Shown: in pieces, positions 3,523 to 55,863 of the stretch | How positions within the stretch are numbered: the first letter of the stretch is position 1 | Layout of the letters: each line of letters starts with the position of its first letter | Source of the DNA: Klebsormidium nitens | Lineage: Eukaryota > Plantae > Klebsormidiophyceae | Direction: 5' to 3' | Assembly (NCBI GenBank): GCA_000708835.1 | Contig: DF237192.1 | Span: 59,878 to 123,877, forward strand | DNA length: 64,000 nucleotides | Program-made: the position numbers and the translations under genes | The notes under the pieces: model-generated | The model's input: only the letters and a program-made list of their open reading frames with translations | Told to the model about the DNA's origin: nothing | Database searches by the model: none

Positions 3523-3583
3523 GGCAAGGATGGCGAATGTGATTTGGGTTGTCGCCCACGTCGTCTTCAATTCCGCTGATGCC
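3523..3583 (+). ncRNA. Box C/D-like family member (RPC1 intron after exon D)
   Basis: GGCA-AGGATGG...TGGGTTGTCGCCCA hairpin...CTGA-TGCC. Confidence 0.55.
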
Positions 3584-4773
3584 TGCATTCAACCAACGGG
3601 AAGCTCACTTTTGCCCGCAAAACGTGAAAGGCCGATCAAGGCGTTACTAACCCCCACACCCCTTTCTCTTAGGCAATTGGCCACATTGGAGGCGTGTGCT
3701 CATGTATTGCTCGGCTGCTGCTTGGTCAGTGCTCTGTAAACCGTCGTTCGTAGAAGGCACACCCTTCTGCCGTCATCATTGACGGGGGTAAAAGTACAAG
3801 CTTTCAGCCTTCAGTTGCAAGCCACCACTTTACGAAGTTCAGATCTGTGTTGAGACGTCCCGGTCGCTTGAATCTGCTCGTCTCTCCTAGAAGCAGCAGT
3901 TCTGCCGTTGGATGTGTTGGAGGTTTGTGCATTTGCCAATCCGTGCAGAGCATTTATACCAGACTTAAAGGTTTGCGAGGTTTGCTCTGCCCCTTTGACG
4001 TTGACAAGCCAAGTGGGGCTGCGTCGTTGCCAGTTTCTACGCCAAACGTTCTCTACCGGCATTGACATTCTGCTATTTGCGGAATCTCCATCCTGTAATA
4101 CGGTACGAATATCAACGGGCCTCTCCAGGCGAGGACGTCATCTTACTATGGGCACAGCTCATTCTTGCAATTTGCACGGACGCCTCGTCTCTTCGCCCGG
4201 AAAAAAAATCTTGCGTACGACGACCGTGGTGCTTTTGTTTGTATCTCGAGGAACCTGATAAGCTTCTTTTGATCTGTGCCTTGATCTTCATTGATCTTCA
4301 CAGGTCAACTCTTTCTGTCGGCTATTACTGGTATTTTCTGTCTTTTCTGCTGAATCCTGCAGAAGTCGCAGGCTTTTGCATGCCATTGGTGTCCGTTTGT
4401 CTTGCAAATGCCTTTCCAAGACACTTCGTACGGTTGGATTGCCCAATCAGAGGCCCTGCGCGGATATTTTGCGGTTCGCTTCCTATTGGCTGAATGTGGA
4501 CATCAGAGCCGGAGGTGCGGAGACTGTTGTGGCGCCAAAGAGGTGTTCATATATGACCTGTCTGTGCTTTCCTCTGCTCAAGGACAGAGTACAGCGTGCA
4601 GAATGTTGCCTTACAAATCTTGGAGTGGTGATTTGACATTTGGTGTGGGGATCGTTGAGAGCTCGAGCGCACCGCATAGCTGCAACACAGCATTGGTTAT
4701 GCAACATTATTGACGTTCTCTGGGAATGCTTTTCTACGACCGTATATATGAGTTTGAGGAGACGAAAGCTTGC

Positions 4774-4850
4774 GTGGCAATGAAGTCAAGTGATGTGGGC
4801 GCCACGGCCGAGTCCCACGCATTGCAAGAATTGCAGTATTTGATGCCGCC
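4774..4850 (+). ncRNA. Box C/D-like member, degenerate (intron after exon D)
   Basis: GTGGCA-ATGAAGT...GTGGG/CCCAC hairpin...TTGA-TGCC. Confidence 0.4.
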
Positions 4851-5858
4851 ATGCTACCATTTCCCAAGAAGCTGCAAATCTGGATGCGTACACACCCAAA
4901 GCGCTTGGAGTGGAGTTTGCAAGTCGAGAATTTCCAGAAGGGCATTGTACGTCCCGCAGCCGTCCAGTGTTCTCGTGTCGTCACCTCAAACTTTGGGTTG
5001 TCAAAGATGGGAAAACGCCTGATGTGCCCATTTCAGGCATCTATTTCTACTTTTTGAGACAACCTTAAATGTTTTTCCTGGACTGTGATGCGTCGTTCTT
5101 AGTGCGTCAATTGAAGCCAAGTAGGTTCCACATGCGTGGAGCAGGTCAATGAGAAACGAATCGAAACTGCTGAATTTGTGTCTTAGTCCACACGCTACCA
5201 GGATACGGTCGTCGACAGGGAGACGAAGAGATTGTCTTGAAAAGTTTGGTTGTTGTATTTGATTGGCGTTCCCCTTCGCTTAGTCATTTTCAACTTGAGT
5301 TGCAGACTCAGAAGAATAAGTCAAGATTGTGCCTGCTATCCTGTTGCGGTGCAAAATTGGGCCCTTGAGAGGTTATGTGATTCTTCTTCTGTCTCCATCT
5401 TGGTGCCCCTTGAGTCGCGCATATGGCGCTTTGACTTGTTGACCTTTCTTAAACTAACTTTTCCGGGGCTACCGACGAACTTTATGACCTGCAAAGTACC
5501 GCTTGCTAATATGTCCCATTTCAGCACACCTCGCTGGCCATGTCACTAAACTTCTTATGCAGTTGGTCACGCCCCTCAATATATGTATATTCGATTTCTT
5601 TGGAAGATAGCTGAGACATCGTTATTCCCTCTTTGATTCCACTGTTCTTTCAACTTCTGTCCAGAACAACAGAAAGTTCTCAGATGTTTGATATTAAGAA
5701 GCGGAGAGCGCAGCTCGCCTCCTCATGATCTCTTAACCACTATCGGGTCAAGTGTGGATATTCAGAGGTTCCATTTCAACCTGTACGATCCGCCCTCTGT
5801 CAGCTGAGTCGTTCCCTTTATCAAACAAATCTAAAGAATCACTGTTTGCCTTGCGCAG

Positions 5859-6017
5859 TCGCTGGAGGACCTCTCGACGATGTACGATGGGACTGTACGC
5901 AACTCCAGCGGGGGCATCGTGCAGCTCAAGTACGGAGACGACGGCATGGACCCCGTCTGCATGGAGGCGAAAGACGGGCAGCCCGTGGACCTTACTCGCG
6001 TAATGATGAAAACAAAG
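5859..6017 (+). CDS. NRPC1: RPC1 exon E
   Basis: SLEDLSTMYDGTVRNSSGGIVQLKYGDDGMDPVCMEAKDG...KTK; cag/GTACGT boundaries. Confidence 0.95.
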
Positions 6018-6415
6018 GTACGTGGAATATCTGGCGGGCTCACTACGCTGGAAGTCGTTGATTGGAAAATCTGTGAGTAAATGCAGAGGGGCAGATCCAG
6101 GGCGGCCGCTTCAGCTTACCTTCTGGAAGGTGGACCCTTCCAATGCTTTTCAAGCATTCCACGGTCTTTGTGGGCTGGGTTTTGGTCTGGCCACGAAAAC
6201 CCAGGTTGTAACGAGCCGTCCGAAAAGGACGATATTGTCTCCGAGGGACCCTCTCCAAGAACTCGCTTGGGAGCTGGCTCTTTGCGATCCCGTAAGAGAT
6301 GCACGAGAACGTCCAGAACAGCCTCGCCCAAGCAGGCGCTTCAGACCGAGAAACTCGGCCTCATTTCAGGCCCTCTCTCATTTTGGTGCTTTCTTGACCG
6401 TCCGATCCCCTGCAG

Positions 6416-6504
6416 GCCCAGTCTCCGTTTCAGGGCCGGCCCGTCCTGACCCCTTCCGAAATGGATGAGATCATCAAGACCGCCTCTCTCAAGAAGACGC
6501 TTCC
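6416..6504 (+). pseudogene. Dead copy A of the 5' end of exon F, with acceptor
   Basis: tgcag|AQSPFQGRPVLTPSEMDEIIK, 1-nt deletion, then RLSQEDAS. Confidence 0.9.
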
Positions 6505-6744
6505 ATTGAAAACTTTGGCGTCGAGACATTGCCTCTCAAGTCGATCTCCGCGCTTGAATTCCAACCGTCCAATTCGTTTGCATGCCTTATGTTTGATTCA
6601 GGGTCCGCCTGTCTTCACCTTGTCGTAAACGGACGACATCGTCCGACAGCGCCTCTCCAGGGAAAAGACAACACGATCAAACCCATGGTTCTATGTCAAC
6701 CTCAGCCAGTGCACTCCGGTCACGTTCGGCCCAACTTTTTGCAG

Positions 6745-6824
6745 GCCTAGTGTCCAATTCAGGGCCGGCCCGTCCTTATCCCGTCCGAAATGGACGATAT
6801 CGTCCGTAACCGCCTCTCTCAAGA
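6745..6824 (+). pseudogene. Dead copy B of the 5' end of exon F, with acceptor
   Basis: gcag|A*CPIQGRPVLIPSEMDDIVRNRLSQD (in-frame TAG at codon 2). Confidence 0.88.
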
Positions 6825-6910
6825 TTTTTGAATTGGGGACTTCGTTCCTATTCCTTCCAAATTTTCTTCCGACTTTCATGCTTAAATCCGAACGAACCAT
6901 TATTGTGCAG

Positions 6911-7212
6911 GCCCAGAGTCCGCTCCAGGGCCGGCCCGTGCTGACTCCGTCCGAAATGGACGAATTCGTCCAGAACCGCCTCTCCCAAGAAGACGCTTCG
7001 ACCGCCAGCGGGTGCTCGGAGCTCTTTAACCGGAGCCTGGCGAAATTCCTCAAGGGCGAATCGGACGCGGTTAGGGAAACCCGGAAGCGGTTAGGACTGA
7101 CCGACAAAACGGAACCAGGGGAAGAAGGGTCCGCGCCGGAACGAGCGGCGGCGAGCATACGGGGCTGGACGGCGCGCCAACTGGAGATCTTCTTGGACAC
7201 GTGTATATCTAG
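6911..7212 (+). CDS. NRPC1: RPC1 exon F
   Basis: AQSPLQGRPVLTPSEMDEFVQ...QLEIFLDTCIS; cag/GTCAGT boundaries, phase 2 fits the next exon. Confidence 0.9.
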
Positions 7213-7662
7213 GTCAGTTCGATCATCTCTCGAGAACCAGCGCTCGTTTTTCTGAACGGGTATCCACCCGTTTCTTGTGGACGGTTATGTTGCTTCGAAG
7301 GGCTGCGCCAGATATTCTGACAAGGGTCTGGACTTTGGGGGTTGGGATGTCATACGTTCCGCTGACTGATCGTAGGCTCGTCGAAGAGCGGTTGTGGTTT
7401 TGATGAACTACCAAACCGAAACGAAAAGGAACTGCTGCCTTGATGCCAATCATCTTTGAGTCCAATCTACGTTCTCTGCTCTCTCAGTTCGCCGTATTTT
7501 GCTGGTTCCGAAAAACCTCAAGATGTGACGTCGACGTCGTGGGAGCGATAGCCTCAATAAGAGAGATTATGTGACATTTGCACCGCTGCACGTGCATCAG
7601 CCCAAGACCAGGGTACGAATCGCTGATAAGCCAAATGGGCGACGGGACTCTCCGAGTACTGA

Positions 7663-7923
<261 letters not shown>

Positions 7924-8225
7924 TGAATCCCGTTTCGAGCACTTTCTAACAGGTCTTGTAGGCAACACAGTGGCTTCTTAAGGTGTTTCAGACCGGAGAT
8001 ATCGGCCTGCACAATCGGTATAGCGGGCGGGTGTCTACACGTGCGTAATGTTCAAGACGATGTTGACCGTTGACCCGGCACTTCTGGTTAGACCTGGTAA
8101 CATTGAAGGACATTGGCTGCTTAGCAAGAAGGATTCTTTGAGATCGCTGTGCTGATCGCGAAGGTGTTGCGTTCGAATTTTACTAACTGCAATGAAGGAT
8201 TTTAACACCCAGTAAACTCCTGCAG

Positions 8226-8377
8226 ACATCACGCTGGGAGTCCCGCGCATCAAAGAGATCATCAACGCCTCCAAGAACATCAGCACGCCAATCATCACCG
8301 TCAAGCTAGTGTCCGAGCACGACCTCAAGGCGGCACGCATTGTCAAGGGCCGGATAGAGAAGACGACGCTTGGAGAG
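8226..8377 (+). CDS. NRPC1: RPC1 exon H
   Basis: (N)[27 protein letters not shown]...[12 protein letters not shown]; donor GTAGGT. Confidence 0.97.
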
Positions 8378-9046
8378 GTAGGTTCCGAGTCCCGTCCTGA
8401 CTCGCTTTCGGGTTGTCTTGATTGCGGTCAGGACGTCTGCGTGAGAAGCCGTTCCTTGACGGGGCCATCCTTCAACAGTCACAATTGAGAGGTCTCATAC
8501 CCAGAAGCTCCGTGAAACGTAGTCTGCAACCCTGCTTGGGTGCCTCAGAGTTGAGTATGTTGACGTTTTGTCGACTCACTTAGATTCTGGCCCTCGCGTT
8601 GCCTGGACGGCAGCAAAGAAAAATGCGTTTCGATTTAAGTCAGCCGAAGTATTTAGGAGAATAGTCCACCTGACCCTGAAACAGGTCTTGTGATCGAGAA
8701 ATGGAACGACGGCGGTACGATTTTTGTCGAGGTTTCTATAGCTCTCCTATGCTCTGAAACGCAAAACTTTTGTCACTTGTATAAATATTAAACTCCCGTC
8801 TCTTTATCTTTTTAAATTCAGTAAAAAGATCTACAAAGAGACAGGGCCGTGTGAGTTGAAACTCGTGTCCGGCCCGATGAGAAGAAAAGCGTTGTCTCGC
8901 CCTTGTCCCAACCCGAGTAGCATGGGGCACGTGAAATCCCGTGTGAATCTGCAAGGACCACCTCGTAAGGCTAAATCCTCCTGGACGACCGACAGCAAAC
9001 TTAGAAGCATGAGTCTATCCACCCAATTCCGGCGCTTTGCTCCCAG

Positions 9047-9319
9047 GTGGCGGATCACATCCAAACCGTCCTCGAGCCGGGCCGCGCCTTCATCTCCGTC
9101 CGACTCGACATGGACCGCATCCAGTCCCTCCAGCTGGGCATCGACGCGATAACGGTTGGGGACTCGATTGTTAACGCCCCCAAGATGAAGATCAAGCACT
9201 CGCACATCCGCGTGATCCGGCGCAACAAGCTGATTGTCTTCCCGCCCGACCAGGACCGGGGCAAGATGTTCTTTGCGCTGCAGTCGTTGCGCAACGCACT
9301 GCCTAGGGTCATCGTCAAG
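9047..9319 (+). CDS. NRPC1: RPC1 exon I
   Basis: VADHIQTVLEPG...LRNALPRVIVK; cag acceptor, GTGAGA donor. Confidence 0.93.
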
Positions 9320-9995
9320 GTGAGAGAGCTGCCTGACAGATTACTTCCAGCTTACTTAGGTCCTTTTGTTCTTGAAATGTGGATGTTGAATTTTGAAGCG
9401 GATCTGCCCAAGTGCAGCCCAATCGTTCATCAGTCCTTTCCTTCGCACGCCCTTACAAGTGGCAATAAGGGTAACGATGAGTTTGTAATGACTGTGTTCT
9501 TCGATTCTGTTTCGACTGGTTCACTGGAAGTCTCTCGGTGTCCTTGTCCGTTCCAAATCGTGTGCACGGTCTTTTCGTGTACATGCATACCGAGCCGGTC
9601 AGAAACCTGGGGCCACCGATCCGAAAGCGAGGGTACGTTGAGGAGTCTTACAAGATTGACTCGCAAATGCAGAAAAGCTTTCCGAGGGCTGAAGTCAAAG
9701 ACCTCAATGAGCTGAAGGCCGTGCTTATTCGTCGCTTGTGAATCGCTCGTGCCTTGGTCTGCTTCTACATGCCTCGTCGTTCTATTCGAAGCACCCAAGG
9801 ACATTTGCTTGGAGCCGTCAAGATTGCGAATAATATGCCTGCAACCTGTGGCTATGAAGACCCTGTTTTCCTGACTCAGAAGTCATGTCTCGTGGAATGC
9901 GAGCCGACTGCCACAAGCAGACTACTGCGTTTATTGGATAACGGAAGAGTTAGACTGATCAGTACGGCTTTCTTTGTAAAGGTTTCGGAAGTCGG

Positions 9996-10061
9996 GGCAA
10001 TGATGACCGCCGTCTGGGGCGGGATTGCGCTTCCAAGCGTTGCTGGGGTGTTCCAGATGCC
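9996..10061 (+). ncRNA. Box C/D-like member (intron after exon I)
   Basis: GGCA-ATGATGA...CAGA-TGCC. Confidence 0.45.
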
Positions 10062-10128
10062 AATCTGTGTACGCATCTTTGAAAGTGTTGAGTTTGGTGA
10101 CGTTTGTTGTGGTTGTGTCGAGCCCTTC

Positions 10129-10200
10129 GTGGCCGTGATGATCGTCGTTCATTGACCTTGAAGTCGGAGGTCATGATGTGCGGGAGAGTTTGAATGCCAC
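10129..10200 (+). ncRNA. Box C/D-like member (intron after exon I)
   Basis: GTGGCC-GTGATGA...TGACCT/AGGTCA hairpin...TTGA-ATGCCAC. Confidence 0.5.
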
Positions 10201-10683
10201 GTGCGAAGGACTTGATAGACGAGTATGAAGAAATTTGAGAATGTTCAGAACGTCTAAGCGAAGTTGTTTGAGATTTTCCCACAAGCGTGCCCTGTGCGAA
10301 CCGTCTGCTTTTCACCTTCATTTTTAGGGTCAGCTTTGCTGAGCGACCTTCTGAATGCCCAACAGATTGGCTTTCCCACCCGCTACGACAAATTCAACGC
10401 CTTCCACTATGCTTTCCCATAAGGAATATTTACGGCAATCGCTTCTTAAAACGTCCGCTCTCAACCGCGGTTGCAGAGGTCGAGCAATCCGTGACTTTTT
10501 TGAACGCCCTCAGGAGACTTGAATGTGTTTCTCCTTGGTCAGCCAAAGGGGACATTTCCACTAAGCCGTATTGACTGGCTGTTGTTTCTCAATTTGGGAA
10601 GGAAGCTTTTCGTCATCGTCACATGCGAAGAAGTAGATGCATTCGCTTATAATATTGGAAGCTGAGGTAAGAATTGTAAATTA

Positions 10684-10761
10684 GTGGCCGTGAAGATTGC
10701 CTGTTCTTGACTTGCCTTGGAAGGTCATGATCAGCGTTCGATGTTTGTCAGCAGACGCCAC
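10684..10761 (+). ncRNA. Box C/D-like member, paralogue of 10129
   Basis: GTGGCC-GTGAAGA...aggtcatgat...CAGA-CGCCAC. Confidence 0.45.
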
Positions 10762-11231
10762 AAGAAACAGGATTAAGCAGCCGCGTGGATTCAGGATTTA
10801 ACATCGTTCTTGTCTGGCCTGCTTTCGATTGCCGTTCTTGGAGGCTAGCCGGATCCCCCAAGCAAACACGTAAGCAGTGGATAATCGTGAGACAACGATG
10901 GCGTTCATTGTCGGTTACTCTGAGAAGACTCCGCAAGCAGTGCTGGTAATTACGCCTTTCTTTCCTTCTGAAGGTCGGAGTCGTGTGTTCGGTTGGCAGG
11001 CGGGCCACAAGCAATCATCTTTAAGTAGTACGGATGTAGAGCGGTCCAAGTCTGAGTGCTCTTTCTAGATTCTTTTTATTATGGCCATGAACACCCCCTG
11101 TTTTTGACCTCATGTTAAAAATCAACATGGGTACCGTCGTCGGGCCGATGCCACGAGCTTTGTGCATGTGTGATAAATTTTCACAACCTCGGAGCTACCT
11201 CATTGGGAAAGTCTACTTGGCCCTTGTATGC

Positions 11232-11302
11232 TGCGGCGATGAATTCTCGAAAAAGTGGTCCGGGGGCCAGAAGTGCCATCACTGGGTGAGCCTGATGCCG
11301 CA
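11232..11302 (+). ncRNA. Box C/D-like member (intron after exon I)
   Basis: 6-bp stem TGCGGC/GCCGCA, degenerate C box, TGGTCC..GGGCCA hairpin, CTGA. Confidence 0.5.
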
Positions 11303-11770
11303 AGCAGACAGTCCTAGCGTCGTCATCTCACGATTTGTTGAGAGCGCCTGAAGCACGACTTACCCGGATTACAAGTCCTCTTACCGTTTTTGACATCTCG
11401 GGCATCGAAAAGTGCACCCCTCGTTGTTTCCGGATTTATTTTCCCGAAGGATCTTTGTTGCCGACCATCGGCACTTCGGCGAACAGTTTCTCCTATGCGG
11501 TCCTCCTTCGATTTAATGCTGTGAGGCGCTGACTTTTTGCTTGTTTGGAGCGTTTCATTAAGTGAAGGCACGACCGACTCGTGGTTGGCGCAAGCACGTT
11601 AGTGTTATTAATCAAATCAGAGCGTGCATCCAGCACTTTTCGGCCGCCGATTGAAGGCCAATAGCCCAGGTGGGGCAAAACTGTTTGGACGGTTGATGTT
11701 CTCCAACTCCGGACTTTGACTATCTACTTTATGAAACGGTCAGGACCTTGTCGTCACGCACTGAGAGCCG

Positions 11771-11839
11771 GTGGCAATGATGGGCTCGCTCAGATGACCG
11801 GTGAGGCTAACGTCAAGATCCGGGGACCTTGATGGCCAT
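11771..11839 (+). ncRNA. ATGATGG-subfamily C/D-like unit 1 of the intronic tandem array
   Basis: GTGGCA-ATGATGGGCT...TTGA-TGGCCAT. Confidence 0.55.
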
Positions 11840-12299
11840 CTTGTAGCTCACATACCCGTTCCTGGGTGCCACGTGTCTTTGCTTTTCTTCAAAGCAGTGG
11901 CTTGCGAGCGAATCTGCTTCATTGAAATAAGGTTTCTGGTCAACCCAGCGGGGTCAGCGCTGGACTTTCTTTCGCATGGTGCAGCATCTGGAGCAGCTCC
12001 GACACTCTTCGTACTTCCACAAAGGACTCTCATGCAGAACTCTTTGGTTGCATTACCCTAACTTTGTCAAGCCCCAGTCTATCGTGTCCGAGGAAGGTCT
12101 GTGGACTACTGTTGCTCTTTCTCGACTTCGCCGGCTCGTTCTTTGAATCGACGGTGACAAGCATGCAAATTCCGGCTGTCGGTCAAAGGGATGATCGACA
12201 GCCAAGGCGGATTGAGGTTTGACACGGGAGTCCTCTTCAGAAGGATTTTGACGATTCATGAATTCAAAAAAGACGTCTTTGTTAGCGCTTCTATAGGCA

Positions 12300-12365
12300 G
12301 TGGCAATGATGGGCTGGCTAAGATGGCCAAAGTCGCCATGTCCAGGACGAGAGCCTGAGGGTCAT
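12300..12365 (+). ncRNA. ATGATGG-subfamily unit 2
   Basis: GTGGCA-ATGATGGGCT...CTGA-GGGTCAT. Confidence 0.55.
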
Positions 12366-12863
12366 CTGTAACTTTTGTACCCGTTCTTGGTGTGTCCCAA
12401 GTGCTCACTTTTATTCGCACAGCACGAGGTTGCGGCGAAATTGCTCACGAGTACTTGAATTTCGTTCTTTGACCAAGTGCACTGCGTTCAGCTTTGGAAT
12501 CTGCTTCAGATGCGGCAGCATTACGAGTAGACGCGATGCTTATTGTGGGTTCTGTATAAAGCTCTTTACGATGCTTTTATAGTTCTCTAAAAAATCCAGT
12601 TTCATTGTCACTAAAGTAATTCAAAGCCCGTTCTAGGATAAGCCTGAGGACGGGTTGAACACGGACGACCCTCACCTTTCCATGACTTTGCCTTGCCTGT
12701 CCCCCTTTCTCGGTCAACAGTGGTTAGCATGCGCTTCTGGCCAGGGGGATAATTGAAGGCGGGATGGGATATTGATCTGGAACACCATGTGTTTCTTTCC
12801 CAATCAGACTTTGATGTGTCGTGAAGATAGTCGGAACGTCTTTGTGTACGCTTTGGTTGCCAT

Positions 12864-12928
12864 TGGCAATGATGGGCTAGCTTAGATTGCCATAGGCGGC
12901 ATGTCCAAGAGTTCCTGCCTGATGGCCA
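12864..12928 (+). ncRNA. ATGATGG-subfamily unit 3
   Basis: TGGCA-ATGATGGGCT...CTGA-TGGCCA. Confidence 0.6.
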
Positions 12929-13401
12929 TCCTGGTGATTTGCATGTTCGCTTTTGGTGCACATGTGTCCGCTTTCATTTGCAAATTACTCAGGTTGCGGG
13001 TGAATGTGCTTCACGACTACGAGGATTTTTGTTTTCGAAACATGGGCATGGTGGTCTGCATTGGAGTTTGGCTCACATTCGGGAGCATGGAAGACGCATT
13101 TCTTGCTCTGGCTCCGGAAAAAACTTGCTTTGTTGCCCCCTCTCTTGTCCAAAAGGCCATTCTAGATTGAGCGTGAGGGCGGCCCGAAGACGGACATTTG
13201 TTGCCGTCTTTGGACTCCGCCTTGGTCGTCCCCGTTTTCTTATTGATGGTGATCAGCATACAATTTCCGGCTGCCGTTCAAAGGGGTAACAATCAAGGCG
13301 GGGTGTGATTCTGACGCAAGATGTTAAGTTTTTCAATTCCAATCGGACTCTGACGATCCGCAAAGATAGTCGGAATGTCTTTCTTAGCGCTTTAAATGCA
13401 A

Positions 13402-13471
13402 GTGGTAATGATGGGCTCATTTTCGGTTTGCATGGCTGAAATGCTGTCGATGTGTAGAGCCTGATGGCCAT
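13402..13471 (+). ncRNA. ATGATGG-subfamily unit 4
   Basis: GTGGTA-ATGATGGGCT...CTGA-TGGCCAT. Confidence 0.55.
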
Positions 13472-13760
13472 CTTCGAGCGTCATCCATTGTTGGTGCCTC
13501 GTGTACCTGCTCTTGATCAAACAGGACTTGACTACGAAGGGTTGTGGATTAGAACCAGGAGACTCTTCGTCGAGCTGATTAGTCAGGGCTGGATTCTGCC
13601 CTACGTGCCAAGACGATCGGAGCAGCTGCAATACTTTTCAATTCTTGAGGAACACAACTTTTGGTGTCGTTTCCGGATTCGGACGACGGAGCGCAACAGT
13701 GAATGTGGTGACGTGGTGGCGCCTCGTTTCAAGATGGCCTGGTGGACTTTTTTATGGGTC

Positions 13761-13820
13761 TGGCAATGACGAGGCGTTTCCCGTCTTTCGAGGAAAGAAA
13801 GCCATTTTGGTCTGACGCCA
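13761..13820 (+). ncRNA. Box C/D-like member (intron after exon I)
   Basis: TGGCA-ATGACGA...TTTCC/GGAAA hairpin...CTGA-CGCCA. Confidence 0.6.
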
Positions 13821-14707
13821 CTTACGGTCTTGCGTCTTGCTCACGTAGATGCAGAACATCTCTTCTTCTGGCGACTTAGCGGAAGGTTCACCAGGCTTTG
13901 GTCAGGCTACGCTCAATGAAGTGACTGCTGAACAGCACCTGCAAAGACTTCTGTCCTTTAGAGCTTCAGTGTGAAGAGTTTCTAATTTTGGCACGATCGT
14001 TGTTTGGCAAATGATAATTTGATGGTTGTAGAAGTGAAAGGATCAGCAAAGCTTGATGTTTTCCCGTATTGTGCGGGTTGGGTTAGGAGGTGGCCTTGGT
14101 TCGTATGCAAGTTGAAGATGCGCGTTTACCTGGAGCGCTCCCTACTCAGTTAATCAAGAATTGAATCTACCCTCAGCAGGTATCCACCCTCATATGTTTC
14201 CAACCGCAGCAGAACATCAGCTTGAGCCTTCGCTTTTCTGGTATTACTCCGCAATTTCAGCCTTCCATTATGGTCCGTCGGGAACGTTCAACTCTGAACG
14301 CGGCACGGAAAGATCTGTCGACCTTTGTGCGTCCTCGTGACTGACTCCTTATAATCAGCTGCCTCGAAAACCCGCATGAAGCAATGAAGTCGTTAATCGT
14401 GCTGGGATCAACGACCGCTTTGTTCTTACAGCCTCCTGACCGGGGTCACTCGCAATCTCTACCTTTCCTATCATCGTCTTGAGTCCCTCTGTTTTTTCGT
14501 TTGACTGTCTTTTTTGTTTTCAGGTCTACTCTTCTACATCGCTGTCGGTGCGAAGCATCCTGAACATAACCTCGCTGTAATCAGGGGTCGTCACCAAACA
14601 ATTGCCTTCTCCGCAGGATCCCCTCACCGCCCTGGAACGACCATTTCCTTCTGTCCCCTGCGGTCTAGTTTTCCAAAGCGGGTATTAATTCTAGTTTCTT
14701 CCCGCAG

Positions 14708-14992
14708 GGCATCCCCACCGTCGATCGCGCCGTGATCAACGACACCTCCAAGGACGGCGTCCGGTCCTACAACCTGCTCGTCGAAGGCACAAACCTCGCC
14801 GCGGTTATGGGCATAGAAGGCGTGGACGGCTTAGAAACGCGGAGCAACCACATCATCGAAGTGGAACACACGCTCGGGATCGAGGCGGCGCGCACGGCGA
14901 TCATGCGCGAGATCGAGTACACGATGGGCAGCCACGGGATGACGATCGACCTGCGGCACATGATGCTCCTGGCTGACGTCATGACGTACAAG
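14708..14992 (+). CDS. NRPC1: RPC1 exon J
   Basis: [11 protein letters not shown]...[23 protein letters not shown]...[15 protein letters not shown]; donor GTGAGG. Confidence 0.96.
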
Positions 14993-15462
14993 GTGAGGTC
15001 ACGGGAGAGTTGGTGATTATGGGTTGGGTAGCGGGGCTGTACTGTGATCGTTGTGGAAGCGGCTCGCTTTCAGCCGTGAGAATGCTTCACCTCTGCGGAA
15101 GTTAGGGTCACATGTGCCCAAGTGAGGAGACAGCTTGGTCAGCTGTACCTTGAAACCCATCAGCGAAGTTGTCTTCAAAACAGGCAGGTTTACTGCAAGA
15201 AGCGCTTGATAGCGTCTTTCAAAGCTATTCATTTGACACCAAACGTAAGAAGGCGACGTTTTCGACTGCGCCTGGAGCACCCCCGAAAATGTTGAATCTT
15301 TTGCCTGAAGCAGATTGGGTGGAGCGCGCTATATGGATCGCTCGAAACACTTGGCACCCTATCTGAGATGAAGAACCAGTGCCAGTTCCTGTTCTTTGAA
15401 TACTCAAAGCCCTTTCTTTCGATAAGGAGCACTCTTGACACGTCATATCCTTCTATTTGCAG

Positions 15463-21806: not shown

Positions 21807-22119
21807 ATTGCAAGCCGCAAAGCAAGTTGATCGCCCGTACGTACACGCGGCCTAACAGCTGCGGTTGTGCAAACTCATCATTCAATTTCACTTCGTAACA
21901 GGTCAACTATCAGCGAGTGCTATCATCAGTTGCGTCATCAGTTCGTGGATTCAGTCTCTTGCAAAAGATACGTAAAGAAAGTTCTAGAATAATAATTTCC
22001 ATCCTTACTGCCACGCCTATCAACGAAGTAATGAGTTGCTCCCTGAATATAGCCGAGGGTATTTCAATACAGGGGCACCTTGATCTCTATCTTCTTAGAT
22101 GCGTTCGTCTGCAGCAAAA

Positions 22120-28647: not shown

Positions 28648-28666
28648 TAGGATCTTAGATTACTGC

Positions 28667-37478: not shown

Positions 37479-37547
37479 GGCAGTGCTGACGCAAGCGTTT
37501 TGGGCTTCGGCCCAAAGGTAAATATCTTGAGGCTTGCTTCTGATGCC
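37479..37547 (+). ncRNA. Box C/D-like member with a C(UUCG)G tetraloop
   Basis: GGCA-GTGCTGA...TGGGC-TTCG-GCCCA...CTGA-TGCC. Confidence 0.65.
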
Positions 37548-39408: not shown

Positions 39409-39483
39409 GGGCAGTGAAGACTAAGCCAACGGTTCTGGGTTTCGACCCAGTGTTGACCTCGTGTTTACCCAAATCTGAGGCCC
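39409..39483 (+). ncRNA. Box C/D-like member
   Basis: GGGCA-GTGAAGA...CTGGGT-TTCG-ACCCAG...CTGA-GGCCC. Confidence 0.62.
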
Positions 39484-43569: not shown

Positions 43570-43649
43570 AGGCTTTGATGGTATCAGAAGCCTGGGACCA
43601 TACTTCTAATTGTCCCACTGCAGGTGTCCGCATATCTCATCTGAGGCCT
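43570..43649 (+). ncRNA. Box C/D-like member inside the 368-aa ORF
   Basis: AGGC-T-TTGATGG...TGGGAC/GTCCCA hairpin...CTGA-GGCCT. Confidence 0.45.
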
Positions 43650-43989
43650 TTGTGCAAGAAGGAAAACTATCTACAAACAAGTTGCTGTGTCCTAGAGTCG
43701 AGTCCAAATCCCGGATGGGACAACTCTGGGCTAGAATGTCTTCCTGGGTTTCTGCTTGCTTGCGCACCCCAAAGTCGACATCAATCAGAAGGCTGTTTCA
43801 GCTCGCGTCATCTGAAAGCCGAGCAACCTTTTGAGTTTCGTAGCGCACCGAGTGAGTGTAAGTTAGTCGACTCATGACTACTATGTTGTGCCGCTTTGTC
43901 GCCAACGCTCCTGCGCCGTCTCTGTTCCATCCGCCTGATGAAGGGCCGCTCACGAGCGTGTTTCTGGAGTCGGTCAGATCATACCGATG

Positions 43990-44240
43990 GTGCTTCCCAC
44001 CTCAACATGAAGCTGCTTGTCACTAGTGCTGGACCAGAGAAAAGAAATCCGACATGGGCACGTTTTCAAGGCAGTGTGATTCCAAGCGGTCTGGTCCGCC
44101 CGTAGACTCCTAGCACGTGACCACCCGGCCCCGGGCGCTGAGCGGCTTCGCAGCGGCACACGTCGAGGCGCTCCAACGGCGCGCGCTCTTAGCCGCTTCG
44201 CGGCTTCGCGGCTTCACGGCCGCGCGCGTCGAGGGGAACA
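43990..44240 (+). repeat. Duplicated block including an island (paralogue at about 51555-51780)
   Basis: acctcaacatgaagct.cttgtca, gtgtgatt.c.aagcggtc, gcacgtgacc, cgcgcgctcttagccgcttcgcg shared. Confidence 0.85.
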
Positions 44241-45625: not shown

Positions 45626-45750
45626 TTGAGGGCGAAATGCTGTATGTATTGAGTAGAAAAGGCTTTCGACAATCCGCTAGGCTGAATTTCTGGAAAGATT
45701 TCAATACGCTCATTCATGCATCTTTTGCTGCAGAACAAAGAGGCAACTGG

Positions 45751-45820
45751 CGGCAGTGATGACAAAGGCGTTTTGGGCTCCGACCAAACAAGAGTTTTGA
45801 CATTGCTTGCGCCTGAAGCC
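45751..45820 (+). ncRNA. Box C/D-like member
   Basis: CGGCA-GTGATGA...TTGGGCTCCGACCAA...CTGA-AGCC. Confidence 0.6.
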
Positions 45821-46311
45821 CTTCGAAGCTTTCCAGTGCTCTCAATCTTATTTTACAGGCGCACAAGATAGAACCTTTCAAAAGAGGTCAACGAAACAGA
45901 GAACGGATCTGAGCAATGATGACCAGTGGCGAGAATGCTAAGCAATCTGCTTCAGATGTAGGCACGCAACGTTGCGGGGGCGGAAAGCGGAGGATCGAAA
46001 CGCAGCCATGCAATATTACTCGAGTTGGCAAACCTCCGATCGTAGCACCCTACCCAACTTTTCAAGCGAAATATGTAACAAAGGCTCCGCACGTCATTCC
46101 CCCAGGGCCAGGCCGCCTATTTTGAATCTTGCGATGAGAGCTAATTATCATGAGCAAAAGGTTTGAATTTGGTCTCGTCGGGTTCTGAAATAAGAACCTT
46201 GCTTCAAGATGATATCAGGTGGATGCTCTGAGCATATTGCAGGACTGGAAATCATATGTGGATCGCTCCAAGGCACGACTCATACCAGGACGCTCTCTGC
46301 AGAACTCCTTG

Positions 46312-46830: not shown

Positions 46831-47048
46831 GTGCTTTAGCTGATCCACTCAGATGTAGCAAGGGCAAGAGCCTGTGAATTTGATTCGACATCCAGCCGAG
46901 GCCTAGCTGAGAACTTCGGATTATTCGATGTTCAGATGCCAACTTTAGCCTGGACAATAAGGCAGCACCCTTCTGGTGCCTTTGTTACACAGGTTTTGCA
47001 TCTGTGTCTGGCACCCTCACTTTCAAAAGAGAGGAAGCAATTTTTGCA

Positions 47049-47124
47049 AGGCAGTGAAGACCCAACTGACACGTTCTCGTTCTGGGCTCCCGCCCAATCA
47101 TGGACCATGCATGGTTTTAATGCT
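47049..47124 (+). ncRNA. Box C/D-like member, degenerate D box
   Basis: AGGCA-GTGAAGA...TGGGCTCCCGCCCA...TTAA-TGCT. Confidence 0.4.
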
Positions 47125-47545
47125 CTGCTGGCGGCTTCCCATTGCCTTTTCAAGTCGAGTGCATACTAGATGATATGGCCCCGCCCGCAAACGAGGAATG
47201 ACCAGTTTAAGTTCAAGGCCCCCGGACATCAGAAAGAAGGCACATGGACGAGCTGGTCGGGGTGCGTTGGCCATGGAGGGCCCTCGAAATCAACTCAAGC
47301 AACAACCGATCACACAGTGACTTGACGAAAACGCTATCTTTTGCGACGCCCGGCGGCATTGTGTTTTGACTGCGCGTACGAACACGCACCTCTTTTCGAT
47401 TCTTCACTTCTCACCCACCACAGATGGCTAGAATGTTTAGTCATAAGTTCCGTTGGGCGGGCGTCGATTCTTGGTTCCTTCCTCCCAGCATTTTATCCAC
47501 GCCAAACGTAATTGTTGAAGTGTCTTACGCTATACTGCAGTAGCT

Positions 47546-47608
47546 GTGGCAAGGACGAGAGCCTCTGCATGCTTTGTTGACACAAGTACGAGGCCACTCT
47601 GATGCCAT
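47546..47608 (+). ncRNA. AGGACGA-class member
   Basis: GTGGCA-AGGACGA...acgaggcca-ct-CTGA-TGCCAT. Confidence 0.6.
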
Positions 47609-49720: not shown

Positions 49721-49757
49721 TTCAAAGCCTACGGTACAGTCCGTTAAGGTCGCTAGA

Positions 49758-49820
49758 TGGCAGGGAAGTCAAATACGCAGCGCCGGGCTCTAGCCCAAGA
49801 ACTCCAGTACTTCTGATGCC
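49758..49820 (+). ncRNA. Box C/D-like member, degenerate C box
   Basis: TGGCA-GGGAAGT...GGGCTCTAGCCC...CTGA-TGCC. Confidence 0.5.
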
Positions 49821-50653
49821 GTGAAAGGTTTTGCAACTCAGGCCCTGAGTCGAACCGCGCGCCACGTGTTAGATTACTGGGCAACGATGAATTCAAGAGG
49901 CGCCGAGTACATTTGGAAGATGGCGCTGGGGGAAACGTCAAGCCGGCTCTGTGGGCCAGGATAATATTAGCCAACAAGGATGTGACGTGTTCTATAATCC
50001 GTATCCTTCTAGAGATCACTACTCCTGCAAAGCGTCAGAGTCAATCGGATCAGCCGACTTCCGGTATAAAGTGACATCAAAGCATTAAATCTCCAATCAA
50101 ATAGGGCTTCCCAAAGTAAGAAAAGAACACCAACCGTAAATCCTGATAAAAATCGTTTCAATGTGACATGCGAATATATGGCTTCAAATCTGTTTGTAGT
50201 TTGAAGAAGCGGACTTTATGTTAGCAGCTTCGGTCGTTGTTTCTCTTTAGCGGGTTAACCTTGTGGGTTTAGTATTTGACAAGGGCTTCTGCCAGCGGCT
50301 CATTGGGTCATTGGGAGTTTGAATTTGTTCAAACCACAAGGCCACTTTTCCATCTCGGTGGCAGTCACCCGTTATGGTAGAGTATTAGTAGGAAGTTTTA
50401 CAGATTGAAAGCGAAGTACAGTGCAGATGTATAATATGCTCAATGCTTCTTTACTTGGCTAGAGATCCAAAGAGAGTGATTATCAAACATAATTTCTGCC
50501 GGCGTTTCCCTTCTAAAATTTGTCGCAGTCATCTGAAATCCCGAAACCAAGGCAGTTGTAATAAACACCCAAACAAAGCAACGCTGATCTCACTCTAAAG
50601 AGTCTCAGAATGGCTCCACGATTGCCTCATAAATATGCAGACGCGGCCGTGGA

Positions 50654-50716
50654 TGGCAGTGAGGACGTCAGCGGAGTGATGGGCTCAGGCCAAGAGTAGT
50701 AGCCATCCTGAAACCA
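50654..50716 (+). ncRNA. Box C/D-like member, degenerate
   Basis: TGGCA-GTGAGGA...TGGGCTCAGGCCAA...CTGA-AACCA. Confidence 0.4.
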
Positions 50717-51669
50717 TACCGCTTGCCGGGCCATTTTTATTTCAGACTGCGCGCTACACACTGCCACTTAGCAAATGACTGCGCAACTCACGCGAGGTCG
50801 TACTCGAGCTTGAAGCAGATAGTTCGAAGCCCGGTCGAAGCATCTGATCCATGCAGAGCAAGAGCGACTAGCGCTCTGACTTCGACGTGCGCGTCCCGCA
50901 AGGACTCAGGCTTGCCTACGATTGCACAAGGGATACAGAGGCGGCTCGTTGTATCGTATGAAGCAGTTCTAGTACAAAGCGAACCTGATTTTGATAGAGG
51001 CTTTGACGGTTTCCAAAAGCATGGGGTTCTCCTAGATCTTAGGATAGTCCTACTGCAGGACTCGTCCAAGGCCAACGCACGAGAAAGAAACGAATGTTGA
51101 GCGGCTAGCTGTGTCCGGGATTCGACCCAACCATGGATGATACAAATTAAATCCAAATGTGACCATCTTCTTCTTCAACTTCAAAGAACGATGTTTCCAG
51201 CTTGCGTGGTAATCGAAAGGCATCGAGCATCCTCTGATAGCGCATGCCGAGTTGCTGCCTTGTGAATGCATGTAAGGCGTAGCTTTCCAGAGAGCGTAAA
51301 CGCTAGTGACTGCTCCCCTTTTTGTTATTGTATGTACAGACTGTACAGTCGCGTGATCACTCAAGATTTTGCCATAATGGTCGCCAAAGCTCCTGCGCTG
51401 CATTTGTTCCATATAACTGATCAAGGCCCATTCACAAACGTATTCGGCGTTGGTCAAAGCTTGCTAGCTTATAGCAATGCCGTCTAAAAGACTATATTGG
51501 GCAACCGTGACCGAGATAGTTACTGGGACCGCTTTCCAAGTTTCCCATGTCTGATTGTGCTTTCTACCTCAACATGAAGCTACTTGTCAATGTAGCCAGA
51601 GCAGAAAAGCAAATCTCCTCGTGAGCACGTTTCCAAGGTAGTGTGATTCAAAGCGGTCATTGGAACGCC

Positions 51670-52050
51670 GGCACGTGACCGCCCGGTGAGCAGCTTCGTG
51701 GCCGCGGGCGTCGAGGCGCTTCCGCGGCGCGCGCTCTTAGCCGCTTCGCGTCTTCGCGGCCGCGCGCCTCGAGGGGGCTCGCTGCGCGCTCTCTGAGCGG
51801 CTTTGTGGTCGCGTGCGCCGAAGAGTTAGCCGGCCGCGGGCTCTGAGCGGCTTTGGGGCCCCGCGCCCTAAGCCGGCAGAACATCCAGACTCACCGGCCG
51901 CAACCCCTTTCACAGTGCGCAGCTTCGCGCCATCGTGAGCAATCCGAAATGGCCCCCCGGTCGCTGCCCGACTGGGTCGCCGCTGATACAGAAGGCGGCG
52001 GCCGCAAACACGCTTTGCAACCAGGCGGCCGCCGCGTGGCCGCCTGTGAG
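51670..52050. promoter_or_regulatory. CGCG-rich island
   Basis: Paralogue of the 44110 island; internal ctctgagcggcttt repeats. Confidence 0.3.
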
Positions 52051-52332
52051 TGGCCAGAAGCTTACGAATTTTATCATCGCAGCCGTGCTTCAAGGGTTCA
52101 GCACGGCTGAACGGCAAAGGGGTTAAAACTGGTTTAGTGCAATAAGCGCGGGTGCACCAGGTTTCTCGGTCGAGGCAGTGAGCGACGTAACGGGCGCGGG
52201 TTATGGAGACGGATACGGGGTCAAAAGAGGCAGTCATTTCGGCTTGATTACTGTTTCAGTGAAGCGGGCTAAACTTTTTCAAATCCAACACCACTATGTA
52301 CCGTCCATTCAGTGATTCTGTTTGTCGGTGAA

Positions 52333-52404
52333 TGGCAATGAAGTTGAATAGATCTTGGGACTTCAGCCCCGGGGCCCATGCCTCCTTCACAAGCTCCTGA
52401 CGCC
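52333..52404 (+). ncRNA. Box C/D-like member
   Basis: TGGCA-ATGAAGT...TGGGACTTCAGCCCC...CTGA-CGCC. Confidence 0.45.
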
Positions 52405-53895
52405 CCGGTGATGCAACGACTTGCCATCTCAGGTCAATTGCTGATCTTTTGTCAATGTCCAAGCAACCATGCATGCGCACGACCTAATATGCATATATGA
52501 AGCCAGATTGAACCTTGAAGCGAGGCGCCAGATTGCCCAGCCTAAGTGAAAGGCAAGAAGGCTCTTGAACTGGGTCAAACTCGCCTTGTGGCAGTTTGGA
52601 AGCAGTGCATCCGAATCGTAGTCGTAAACACTTCCGGTCGATGATTCAGGCAAGATTCTCTTGTAAATGTACGCTCAAGACCTGGCGCGCGGCACGCACA
52701 GGGGAAATGCCGCCCGTCTGATGAAGCAATCCTTCTTTGCCCCGTATATCACGGGAAGTCGACCTTGCCGTTTGCACACTACCAGCTGACTTGCGCGCGG
52801 TCAGGGCGTGTCCCCGGCCAAGGCGTCGTAGTGACACTGGAGTGCTGGAGTCCGTCACTTCATTTAACGAGATTCTGTACATGCCGCCCTTTTAAGGCCA
52901 GGCCTTTTCATACAAGGGTTGCCTTTGTGAGGCTGTGAGGCTGCGATTTGACAAGGGCTTTAGGCCCAACGAGGATGCCTTTGCACCGATGCCTCTCTGG
53001 CATCAGTTGTTATGACTACTCTGAAAGGACATTGGCGCAGATGAAATTCACGGATTCGATGTCGCCTCGAGTATTCCTGAGGGTTGACCAAACGCTAGTT
53101 AAGGCTTTTTTGACAAGAGCTGATCAATAGTGCTGCCAGCTTCGCTATGCATTTCTTTCTCCCTGCTGAGCTAAGCGGCAAAAATGGGGCCCATAGAACA
53201 TTGCGTGGGATCTCAATAACAGATCCTTCGTTTTAGAAAAACTCACAACATAAACATTTACTAAACGGCTTCTTTTTTAAGCTCGCGTTCGTTACATAGC
53301 TACGCGGAATTCACCCTGATCTCTGGAAGATTTTGGACATTGAATTTGAAACCAAGCACAATTTGGCGCTTTATGGTAAACTCGCAAAATAATGGCAAAA
53401 ACAAAGAGGTTATGAAGTCATTGTGGATCGTGGGCTTTCACTTGAGCCCATAGCAAATCTGCCATGTAAGGACCAATCAGATACCGTCTTCGTGTCTCAC
53501 AGGATTTGGGTCGGTGCAACGCTCCAGGTTTCGCGACAAGCGGCCATGATGCATTGATGGGCGCTTCTGTCCCCATCGGCCAGCTTCGAATATCCTTCAG
53601 TCACGCTTAAAATTGGCGCAGCGTGACGAAGATTGATTTCGGACAGAGCTCGGACGACGTACTTCGGATCAAATTTGGCAATCTTTGGATGCCTGACCAC
53701 GCAATCCCAGTCTCGAACTCTCGTTCTTCAACAACGACTAATACCCAAGTAGTGAAGTAATCTGCGTCATCGGCTGCACACCGCCCGTCACCAAAAAATT
53801 GTTTTGTAAGGGCTTTTGGCTTTGGCTGTCTAGGATTACGCAAAGCTCCCGTTGCGTTATTCTTGCAGTCGCATGTTTATCCGATCAGCATCATG

Positions 53896-53972
53896 AGAGG
53901 CAATGATTGCCATAGTGTTCTCTTGATGGGCCACTGCCCAACAGGGGGTCTCTTACGATCTTGGATGCCTCT
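53896..53972 (+). ncRNA. Box C/D-like member with a 7-bp terminal stem
   Basis: AGAGGCA-ATGATTG...TGGGCCACTGCCCA...TGGA-TGCCTCT. Confidence 0.55.
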
Positions 53973-54595
53973 TCACCAGCAGAAATTTTTCCAACATTCA
54001 TACTACTTGCTCGCTTACCAGCTACAAATAAGCTTTCTCTGCAGAAACGTGTTCGAAGTTGAGGGATTGGGTTTTTACTGTGGTCTCCAGTAGCATTCTT
54101 TAGCAATGTCGACGCTAACACCTCTGCGCTTCTTCGTGCGAGCGTTAATTGCACGTTGTTGTTATACGGTCGGCAGCCAGCTCTTGCACGCTTTCTAGTG
54201 GCATCAGACCTTGCACTTGTCTGCATCAAATAAAGATTTCTCACTCTTTGTTTGTTGAGCAAGGCGCGGGCTTAGTTGAACTCCGCCGACTTCTACATCT
54301 TTCTGCCTTGTTGATTTCCGTTTCCTGATGGCCACGGTCGATTCATTACTCATGTTGCGATGACCAGATTCGTGGCAGATTAGCAAGCGGTCTTCGGCAG
54401 TGCATGCAGTACGTTGTGTTTCTTTGCGTTGGTTCTATACCACAAAAAGACATATCCGTCTCCTTCGTTGTGTCAGACGTAGTACGACTTCCCGGAAAAG
54501 ACTCTTCAGTTCAGCTTGACGTAAGACCGCTAGTCTAGATCTTAAGGATCTTTCCATGCTGCACGCTGGAGTTCCATCAATGCAAGGGAGCCGTG

Positions 54596-54653
54596 GGGCA
54601 ATGAAGACGCCAGCAAGACTGCGGGCTCCGGCCCACTGTAGTAATGATTGCCC
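54596..54653 (+). ncRNA. Box C/D-like member, short form
   Basis: GGGCA-ATGAAGA...GGGCTCCGGCCC...ATGA-TTGCCC. Confidence 0.5.
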
Positions 54654-55812
54654 TAACCCGCTTAATTTTAAGGCCATGCTGTTTGCCGGCCCTTCCCATC
54701 GGAGTCACGCGCTTTTGGCAAAAACCGGGGACAAAGCGGCAGGCTGCTGGCTCTAGGCTGATTCCAGTACTTGAAACAAGAGAAGATCTTGAGCCCATTG
54801 AATGTGTTACAGAAATGCAGAAATGCAGGCCCGCGCTTTGATGTAACATCCCTTGCTGCATTCTAACGCGTGCCCAGCGCGAAGATGCAAAGGGGGCTCG
54901 TTTTTCCAATCACATGGTCACTGGGACAAGTGACACTCCTCATGGGCCAATCTCCCTTACGGTGGCCAGAACGGCTCCTCTCGATAGCATGTCGAAGCCA
55001 GCACATTTTATGTTTAACCACATGTTCTAAGCAGCCTCAGGCTGATATTTCCGGTGTTCGTTCAACACGATACTTGGGCAGCGCGTTAGTCTCTCAGATA
55101 ATTCAAATGTCGAAGCGCCTCGCTTGACTTGTTCTTTCTTAGCTCTTGCAGTGGGATATCGCAATCGGTTAGTACTGAGGCTATGGTGATGGGTTCAGTG
55201 ATACTGGCGGTGAACCAAGGACGGATGAATGGGTCCGACCCGGACGCCTCTCTTTTCTGTAAGTTGACGGCATGTTTGGATTGGTACCCAGCACAGTCCG
55301 CCGGGGCGACTCAGTCTGAAAACGTCGTTTCTTTCGGAAAGCTCTGCAGAGTAAGTTTTCAGTTAATATGTAGAGGCTCTAATGATGTGTAAAGCTTGGG
55401 ATTCGGCTTACGGATAGTCTTGTTGGGGGCAAGAAGCCCCATTACTGAGAACAATGTGAGAAAGCAACCATCATTCGTCGTTGCTGCCAGTGGGTCTTCG
55501 GTCCGAGCCTACTCCATGGATGTTAAAGCTCTGAATTTAACTGCCTCCCTTCTCTTATTGCTCGCCCCAAATCGCTGCATACATATCAGTTTATGCGGTC
55601 AATGTAAAGCTCTGAGCAACGTATAAAAGCTAGCGCACGGAACGGTTGCAACCTAGTTGGCAATTGACTACGTACTATCCGGCAGTCCATTAATTATGGA
55701 AAAATCCTGCCGTACAGATGTTCCATAACTTCGATGAGGCCCGCTTATGATCGCGATCAGAGGTTTTCAGAGGTCGCTTGTTGCGACTTTGATTAAAGTC
55801 CTTACGTAGCAA

Positions 55813-55863
55813 GCGGCCGTGACGAGAAAGTCACTGGGGTCTTCAACACTTACATTGATCGCC
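55813..55863 (+). ncRNA. Box C/D-like member, short and degenerate
   Basis: GCGGCC-GTGACGA...TTGA-TCGCC. Confidence 0.35.

Follow-up and report, generated by a model that had tools for sequence, protein, structure and literature searches.

Most known examples of large orphan box C/D RNA arrays come from mammalian imprinted loci, and what these RNAs do is a matter of debate. SNORD115 and SNORD116 of the Prader-Willi locus comprise tens of co-oriented orphan C/D units over tens of kilobases, and their copies are near-identical, including the guide regions, and carry C' and D' boxes. Canonical C/D small nucleolar RNAs (snoRNAs), organized as polycistronic clusters in plants and as intronic clusters in Chlamydomonas and Ostreococcus, are 60–85 nt long, have their boxes beside a 4–5-bp terminal stem, and are encoded as co-oriented, promoterless units in host-gene introns. 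Archaeal box C/D small RNAs (sRNAs) can be as short as about 60 nt, with a tightly fixed spacer of about 11–12 nt past box C, a symmetric C'/D' K-loop and two 12-nt guides. Euglena and trypanosomatid snoRNA clusters contain high-copy, co-oriented small C/D RNAs that guide modification at known ribosomal RNA (rRNA) sites, and whole clusters are repeated near-identically. Here, a stretch of 64,000 nt from the streptophyte alga Klebsormidium nitens (GenBank assembly GCA_000708835.1, contig DF237192.1, positions 59,878 to 123,877; hereafter the window) is described, whose + strand holds about 40–50 copies of a 60–85-nt box C/D-like module. With moderate confidence, we favour the reading that these modules make up a family of orphan box C/D-type RNAs that is specific to the lineage, has expanded, has a hairpin where the C'/D' motif would be and would mature from introns or a long precursor; many decayed copies accompany it. 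The observed grounds for this reading are the motifs, their strand bias, the sharp edges of conservation, the covariation, the subfamilies, the intronic position and the absence from Rfam; transcription, processing, protein binding and function are the steps that we infer.

The module consists, from 5' to 3', of a stem strand GGC(A), box C (RUGAYGA), an 11-nt spacer (spacer 1), a 5-bp hairpin with a UNCG-like loop, a 14–26-nt spacer (spacer 2), box D (CUGA) and (U)GCC. The clearest example, unit 36411–36472, reads GGCA-GTGATGA, 13 nt, TGGGC-TCCG-GCCCA, 14 nt, CTGA-TGCC, as a first-pass annotation of the window had claimed. The units share size, terminal stem, co-orientation, lack of promoters and placement in host-gene introns with canonical C/D snoRNAs, but differ from these in lacking C'/D', in having a conserved UNCG-like hairpin instead, and in repeating one scaffold in dozens of copies; in addition, neither an rRNA antisense element (in the proxy panel described below) nor an Rfam family was detected. 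The first-pass annotation had likened the locus to the SNORD115/116 arrays. As regards organization this analogy stands, whereas it fails for the copies themselves, since those of the mammalian arrays are near-identical while the units here form several subfamilies with a spacer identity of 31%; any host transcript here would moreover be non-coding. Compared with archaeal sRNAs, which they resemble in minimal size and in the fixed distance past box C, the units have a plain hairpin and a variable second spacer (14–26 nt). Unlike in the Euglena and trypanosomatid clusters, each copy has different spacers. The components therefore belong to a known class, and what distinguishes the family is the minimal kink-turn and hairpin scaffold, the many copies and the near-random spacers.

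When the window was scanned with at most one mismatch allowed, GGCARTGAYGA was found 39 times against 4.5 expected, with 36 of the matches on the + strand, and TGGGC-N4-GCCCA 21 times against 2.3 expected, exclusively on the + strand. The motif CTGATGCC was found 14 times against 2.9 expected. The exact composite motif (GGCARTGAYGA, 9–15 nt, TGGGY-N4-GCCCA) occurs four times on the + strand and not once on the − strand of the window; elsewhere, just 30 stretches in 596 Gb of prokaryotic contigs and three stretches in IMG/VR contain it, and these were set aside as isolated chance matches. A covariance model (R1) with a 4-bp terminal stem and the 5-bp hairpin was built from 14 well-formed units, and both strands were scanned with filters off, the − strand serving as an internal control. 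At E≤0.01, R1 gave 21 matches, all on the + strand, and at E≤1 it gave 40 on the + strand and one on the − strand. These data confirm that the motifs are real and far above chance. The first-pass claims of a motif family and of a high copy number on one strand are supported, and its count of about 50 units is fair once two further subfamilies, types B and C, are included; taken as a whole, its interpretation is partly supported.

At least three subfamilies (types A, B and C) were distinguished, plus many decayed copies. Type A, the largest with about 20 units, has the layout GGC(A), RUGAYGA, spacer 1, T-GGGC/GCCC-A hairpin, spacer 2, CUGA and (U)GCC, and its hairpin loop is UYNG (UCCG, UUCG, UCUG and similar), which confirms loops of the UUCG/UCCG type. 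Spacer 1 is 11 nt long in 10 of the 13 best units, and spacer 2 ranges from 14 to 26 nt. Type B comprises about 8–11 copies, several of them decayed, with the layout GUGGCA-AGGACGA, about 20 nt, UGGCC-AARCGA-GGCCA, about 18 nt, CYGA-UGCCAU; in its hairpin, a compensatory swap has put C-G where type A has G-C. Type C is represented by four copies spaced about 540 bp apart between 11.8 and 13.5 kb, reading UGGC-A-AUGAUGG ... CUGA-UG-GCCA. Among the 20 best units, the G3-A4 dinucleotide of box C is present in 18, and about 15 have a box C with at most one change from the consensus RUGAUGA, type B having AGGAYGA. Box D is an exact CTGA in 14 of the 20, and CCGA, CGGA, ACGA or decayed in the rest.

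A conservation profile was obtained from the 20 best units aligned on their ends. Information content is 1.3–2 bits across GGCAGTGA.GAC and CTGA.GCC and drops to about 0 directly outside. Mean pairwise identity was 78% at scaffold positions, 31% (near random) in the spacers, 26–27% (random level) in the 40-nt flanks, and 25% at 100–200 nt upstream. The terminal stem shows GGC:GCC pairing in 88% of cells, with covariation (outer pair GC, GU or AU). Compensatory changes were observed in both helices, with double changes in five of nine pairs (nine cells in total), values that none of 500 shuffles matched, and pairing was 90% in register compared with 32–45% when the partners were slid; the alignment used was fitted to the model and is biased towards the structure to that extent. 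This pattern of conservation and covariation indicates constraint at the RNA level, not a transposon or chance. Since flanks and spacers are at near-random identity, the duplications are old enough to have randomized neutral sequence. Neither a transposon nor a recent duplication fits, because the former would carry its interior along and the latter would keep the flanks. The ends of a mature C/D snoRNA normally lie about 4 nt outside each box, which is where the conserved edges end here, and because conservation stops exactly at the stem boundaries, the pattern fits a mature small RNA under selection.

The modules could also be read as a DNA-level repeat without any RNA gene, such as Helitron-like ends (a hairpin, then CTRR) or a miniature inverted-repeat transposable element (MITE). 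The GC-rich hairpin 14–26 nt before CTGA, which is usually followed by T, does resemble a Helitron 3' end, and GGCA and TGCC form short inverted repeats. However, (N)GCC, within the 3–4 nt that follow CTGA, is conserved as well, pairing and covarying with GGC at the 5' end, and the interior is unconserved, unlike that of transposon copies. All copies have a single orientation, and the flanks carry neither a poly-A tail nor a target-site duplication. A DNA repeat is judged very improbable, a Helitron or MITE type being disfavoured by the unconserved interior, the one orientation and the pairing past CTGA.

No significant complementarity was found between spacer 1 and spacer 2 (permutation p 0.18), the spacers give no in-register extension of the kink-turn stem, and their complementarity to the window itself shows no excess. 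The spacers are probably single-stranded; lacking mutual pairing, they are free in the manner of guides. An extended hairpin or a structure like a selenocysteine insertion sequence (SECIS) was ruled out by the same unpaired spacers. The 10 nt adjacent to box D are 70% pyrimidine.

The array begins inside a protein-coding gene, that of an RNA polymerase largest subunit on the + strand at 1749–15016, identified by Pfam Rpb1 domains. Rpb1_4 matches at 1749–2069, and Rpb1_5 matches at 2847–3083 (domain positions 1–39) and 14732–15016 (domain positions 171–250), all on the + strand; these matches confirm Rpb1-type domains and nothing finer. Because the Rpb1 domain-5 exons flank them, the units from 3523 to 13762 lie in introns of the polymerase gene, in the sense orientation. 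The first dozen units are placed in this way, and the remainder extend about 40 kb downstream; all units together are co-oriented across about 50 kb at a spacing of about 0.3–1.9 kb. No coding gene was found between about 16 and 56 kb, and no transfer RNA gene in the window. The longest open reading frame (ORF), 42771–43877 (+ strand, 368 aa, ATG start), was considered as a coding host and rejected, as it matches no Pfam family and a search of 5.8 billion proteins gave no homologue; most probably it does not code for a protein. The flanks carry no conserved element, and the units thus have no promoters of their own.

The following mechanism is suggested for the proposed orphan C/D RNAs. Box C (RUGAYGA, replaced by AGGAYGA in type B) and box D (either CUGA or CCGA) would form a kink-turn with the terminal stem of 3–4 bp. 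From what is established for C/D snoRNAs, the kink-turn would be bound by Snu13, which would recruit Nop58, Nop56 and fibrillarin. The stable 5-bp hairpin, at a fixed 11 nt past box C, would probably serve as a structural substitute for C'/D'. The units would be released by exonucleases halted at the bound proteins, as in plant and algal snoRNA clusters; release from introns or a long precursor is the most likely route because the units have no promoters of their own, share one orientation, and lie first in introns and then downstream. The resulting RNAs may be guides for targets still to be named, or ribonucleoproteins (RNPs) in which the spacer sequence is irrelevant. They are regarded as orphans because both spacers vary freely and have no detectable rRNA match in the proxy panel.

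An old segmental duplication bears on how many of the units are alive. The segments at about 28.1–30.7 kb and 34.3–36.9 kb (28100–36900 overall, + strand) are offset by about 6.2 kb, are about 65–75% identical, and share six copied units. In the pair 28666/35019 both members are intact; the scaffold and the 9–10 nt before box D were kept there, while spacer 1 diverged. Of the six pairs, one member has decayed in four and both members in one. Such losses suggest another explanation, that the array is mostly dead and consists of silent, slowly decaying pseudogenes left after one or a few intronic snoRNAs had repeatedly been copied within the locus. Boxes, stems or hairpins are indeed broken in many copies, local tandem copying is seen in the window (repeat families D1, D2, D8 and D11), and the searches described below found no RNA contigs over the sampled region and no targets. 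By the pseudogene criteria applied to snoRNAs as for SnoBIRD (PMC12309372), many of the units look like pseudogenes, about half of them having mutated boxes or weak stems, with no sign of host expression in RNA contigs over the sampled region. Against this, the scaffold has stayed 78% identical, with compensatory changes in the stems, in about 20 copies whose flanks are saturated with change and whose spacers are at random level. A mostly dead array is disfavoured because neutral decay would erase scaffold and flanks alike, and it is considered unlikely.

Several observations weigh against the favoured reading of a living family of orphan C/D RNAs, concerning the boxes, Rfam, the targets and the RNA data. 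No GA-containing D' box 5' of the hairpin and no UGAUGA-like C' box 3' of it is present in any unit, the place usual for C'/D' being taken by the hairpin, as unit parsing confirmed for the corresponding first-pass claim. Strictly canonical boxes (box C with at most one change, box D CUGA or CCGA) are found in only 11–13 units of the model's match set, whereas the stem, both GA dinucleotides and the internal hairpin are kept in about 20–25, so that the first-pass figure of about 30 well-formed units was generous. The type B box C has a G at the position that normally holds the flipped-out U. Of 34 units, 13 lack the A-U pair adjoining the boxes, which leaves the exact kink-turn geometry uncertain; the A preceding box C may be the first loop nucleotide of the kink-turn, outside the stem, which would fit its missing partner in these 13. 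Rfam gave no match at gathering thresholds and no snoRNA family even at E≤10 over the whole window, and a subsearch of 11 kb gave one 20-bit snoZ107_R87 match against a threshold of 50. The absence of any matching Rfam family also fits the earlier suggestion that the units are lineage-specific.

Targets were sought with a panel of eukaryotic metagenome ribosomal DNA (rDNA) loci collected with an 18S 3'-end probe. It comprised 119 loci, including 15 close to full length, and sense and antisense matches were compared on 14–15 loci; in viral contigs, the same probe found nothing. This panel is a weak proxy for the alga's own rRNA, being very divergent, with only 9–25% of 10-mers common to half the loci, so that guides of 10–11 nt could be missed. 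The longest exact complements were 9–13 nt on sense and antisense alike, conserved complementary 9-mers numbered 19 on the sense and 20 on the antisense strand, and box D-anchored duplexes with G-U pairs allowed averaged 10.4 on the sense and 10.1 on the antisense strand. Seed-plant rDNA pieces, whose coverage of the 18S 3' end and of the 25S 5' end is partial, gave no excess over the antisense control either. In the proxy panel, no unit has a guide-positioned rRNA match of 12 nt or more, and where matches are best they involve the hairpin or the boxes rather than the sequence beside box D. The outcome is no evidence for rRNA targets, and not proof of their absence, as the power of the test was limited by the divergence of the panel. 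It might be that the units are ordinary methylation guides for rRNA or small nuclear RNA (snRNA) whose targets were missed without the alga's own rRNA and snRNAs. The divergent panel and the partial seed-plant pieces leave room for this, and there are a few matches of 10 nt, one of them between GTGTTTCAAG in unit 33074 and a conserved 25S site. Yet sense and antisense distributions were equal in every test, the best matches lay away from box D, and no plant snoRNA family of Rfam was recovered, which makes ordinary guides quite improbable.

In the RNA data, none of the 24 runs listed for this species was found to contain words of 27200–33199, and the contigs of three RNA runs gave nothing on 32000–37999. 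These data consist of assembled contigs from libraries of unrecorded type, and they may miss small, non-polyadenylated RNAs. One run (X29) with a 13% word share was rejected, because its matches are unrelated and short. No stable host transcript was seen in RNA contigs over the sampled 27.2–38 kb. A further possibility is a cis-acting role of the modules on a long transcript, where bound proteins would cap or stabilize pieces of an intron or long non-coding RNA (lncRNA), as in sno-lncRNAs or SPA RNAs, or where the modules would soak up the proteins of small nucleolar ribonucleoproteins (snoRNPs), the spacers being mere linkers. The restriction of conservation to the scaffold with near-random spacers, the co-orientation over about 50 kb at intervals of about 0.3–1.9 kb, and the lack of detected rRNA complementarity are all consistent with such a role. 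However, no long transcript was seen in public RNA contigs, and the fixed 11-nt spacer 1 and the pyrimidine-rich stretch adjacent to box D suggest some constraint on the spacers. A role in cis is held to be decidedly unlikely.

If the favoured reading of an orphan C/D RNA family is right, the locus would be a second independent case of an orphan C/D array, and would offer a simple system for studying the role of orphan C/D RNPs and the assembly of C/D RNPs that have no C'/D' motif. The host alga stands close to the origin of land plants, the scaffold is very small, and the dozens of spacers differ; a reference streptophyte genome would gain a sizeable RNA class not annotated so far. Should the units be silent, arrays of this kind would still illustrate the making and erosion of snoRNA families by duplication within a locus. 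A broader proposal, which is speculative and rather doubtful at present, is that Klebsormidium has several hundred expressed, snoRNP-forming guides in at least five co-oriented arrays on this kink-turn and hairpin scaffold, whose freely evolving spacers would direct 2'-O-methylation or other snoRNP-dependent action at non-rRNA targets, and for which there would be no described counterpart. No description of such snoRNA arrays in Klebsormidium was found in the literature that was searched.

The individual units all lie on the + strand. Broadly in descending order of R1 score, the type A units begin with 29650–29719 (59.8 bits, E 1.4e-14), which reads GGCA-GTGATGA-11 nt-TGGGC TCCA GCCCA-22 nt-CTGA-TGCT, followed by 35019–35086 (58.6 bits), the paralogue of 28666 as seen from alignment of the 6.2-kb duplicates, and by the clearest example, scored over 36410–36473 (57.0 bits, UCCG loop). 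Unit 37477–37549 (56.9 bits) has a C(UUCG)G hairpin and a box C of GTGCTGA. Units 28666–28730, 24729–24795 and 45750–45822 scored 56.8, 55.5 and 55.3 bits, respectively. A degenerate box C (ATGGAAG) is combined with an intact box D and stem in 33868–33932 (54.7 bits), and 32062–32128 (51.7 bits) has a GGCC stem and box D CCGA. The hairpin of 39408–39484 (51.2 bits), TGGGT-TTCG-ACCCA, represents a compensatory C-G to U-A change. Box C is also degenerate in 49757–49822 (48.1 bits), and is AGGATGG in 3521–3585 (46.5 bits), which lies between polymerase-gene exons mapped by Pfam. Unit 22118–22191 scored 42.3 bits. Two units outside the model-building set were recovered, namely 47048–47126 (36.2 bits, E 7e-8), with a decayed box D, and the type A-like 52332–52406 (28.2 bits, E 1.3e-5). 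Unit 27812–27889 (35.9 bits) has an 18-nt spacer 1 and box D ACGA. Decayed type A copies are found at 22995–23075 (21.7 bits), 54595–54677 (20.9 bits) and 50653–50717 (20.8 bits). The decayed paralogue of 36410, at 30235–30306 (18.6 bits), carries the weak, sub-threshold snoZ107_R87 match in Rfam, and a C/D-type unit with a different internal hairpin occupies a polymerase-gene intron at 13760–13821 (18.2 bits).

Type B units were assigned by alignment within the type. Their ends are exemplified by 34834–34906 (GTGGCA-AGGACGA ... CGGA-TGCCAT), 47546–47608 (AGGACGA ... CTGA-TGCCAT) and 37261–37339 (GTGACA-AGGACGA ... CTGA-CGTCA), while 30040–30119 has the hairpin TGGCC-AAAACGA-GGCCA and box D CCGA. 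Type B-like units are 31440–31510 (AGGATGA ... CCGA-TGCC), also found by the R1 scan, and 24404–24474 (GGGACGA ... CCGA-CGCCAC). In 35652–35730, which was aligned with its duplicate as well, the 5' half is intact and the 3' end decayed. The sequence GCAAGGATGAC at the 5' end of type B-like units (31440–31456 and 3521–3537) exactly matches, in the sense direction, 11 nt of the Arabidopsis U6 snRNA given in the supplement of PMC8053127, which is probably a coincidence.

The first of the four type C units, 11771–11838 (GTGGCA-ATGATGG ... TGA-TGGCCA; repeat families D4 and D13), lies in a polymerase-gene intron, and the others are at 12300–12364, 12863–12928 and 13402–13470. Tandem Repeats Finder, run on the intron region holding type C, reported no tandem array. 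A possible fourth subfamily (family D9) is represented by three copies of GACAAGCGGCC-ATGATGG at 30544–30650, 36701–36800 and 53524–53567, which start like a box C and have an unclear box D.

Other repeats and minor features occur in the window. Decaying direct repeats with a 161–188-bp period (families D1, D2, D8 and D11) at 1618–3000 and 6408–6990 overlap ends of polymerase-gene exons. In the polymerase gene region, 8915–8966 (+ strand) gave a sub-threshold Rfam match to bacterial large-subunit rRNA (32 bits, E 5e-6, model positions 410–461), probably by chance or as a small rRNA-like fragment. GC-rich repeat families (D3, D6 and D7, with GCGGCC/GCGGCCGC-type motifs) lie between units at 43986–44233, 51553–51872 and 55985–56024, and similar NotI-like motifs are present near 30640, 36905 and 34290. 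Finally, the ORF at 61517–61969 (+ strand) showed a weak match to a GATA zinc finger (E 0.0024, below the Pfam cut-off), suggesting that a protein-coding gene may start beyond the array.

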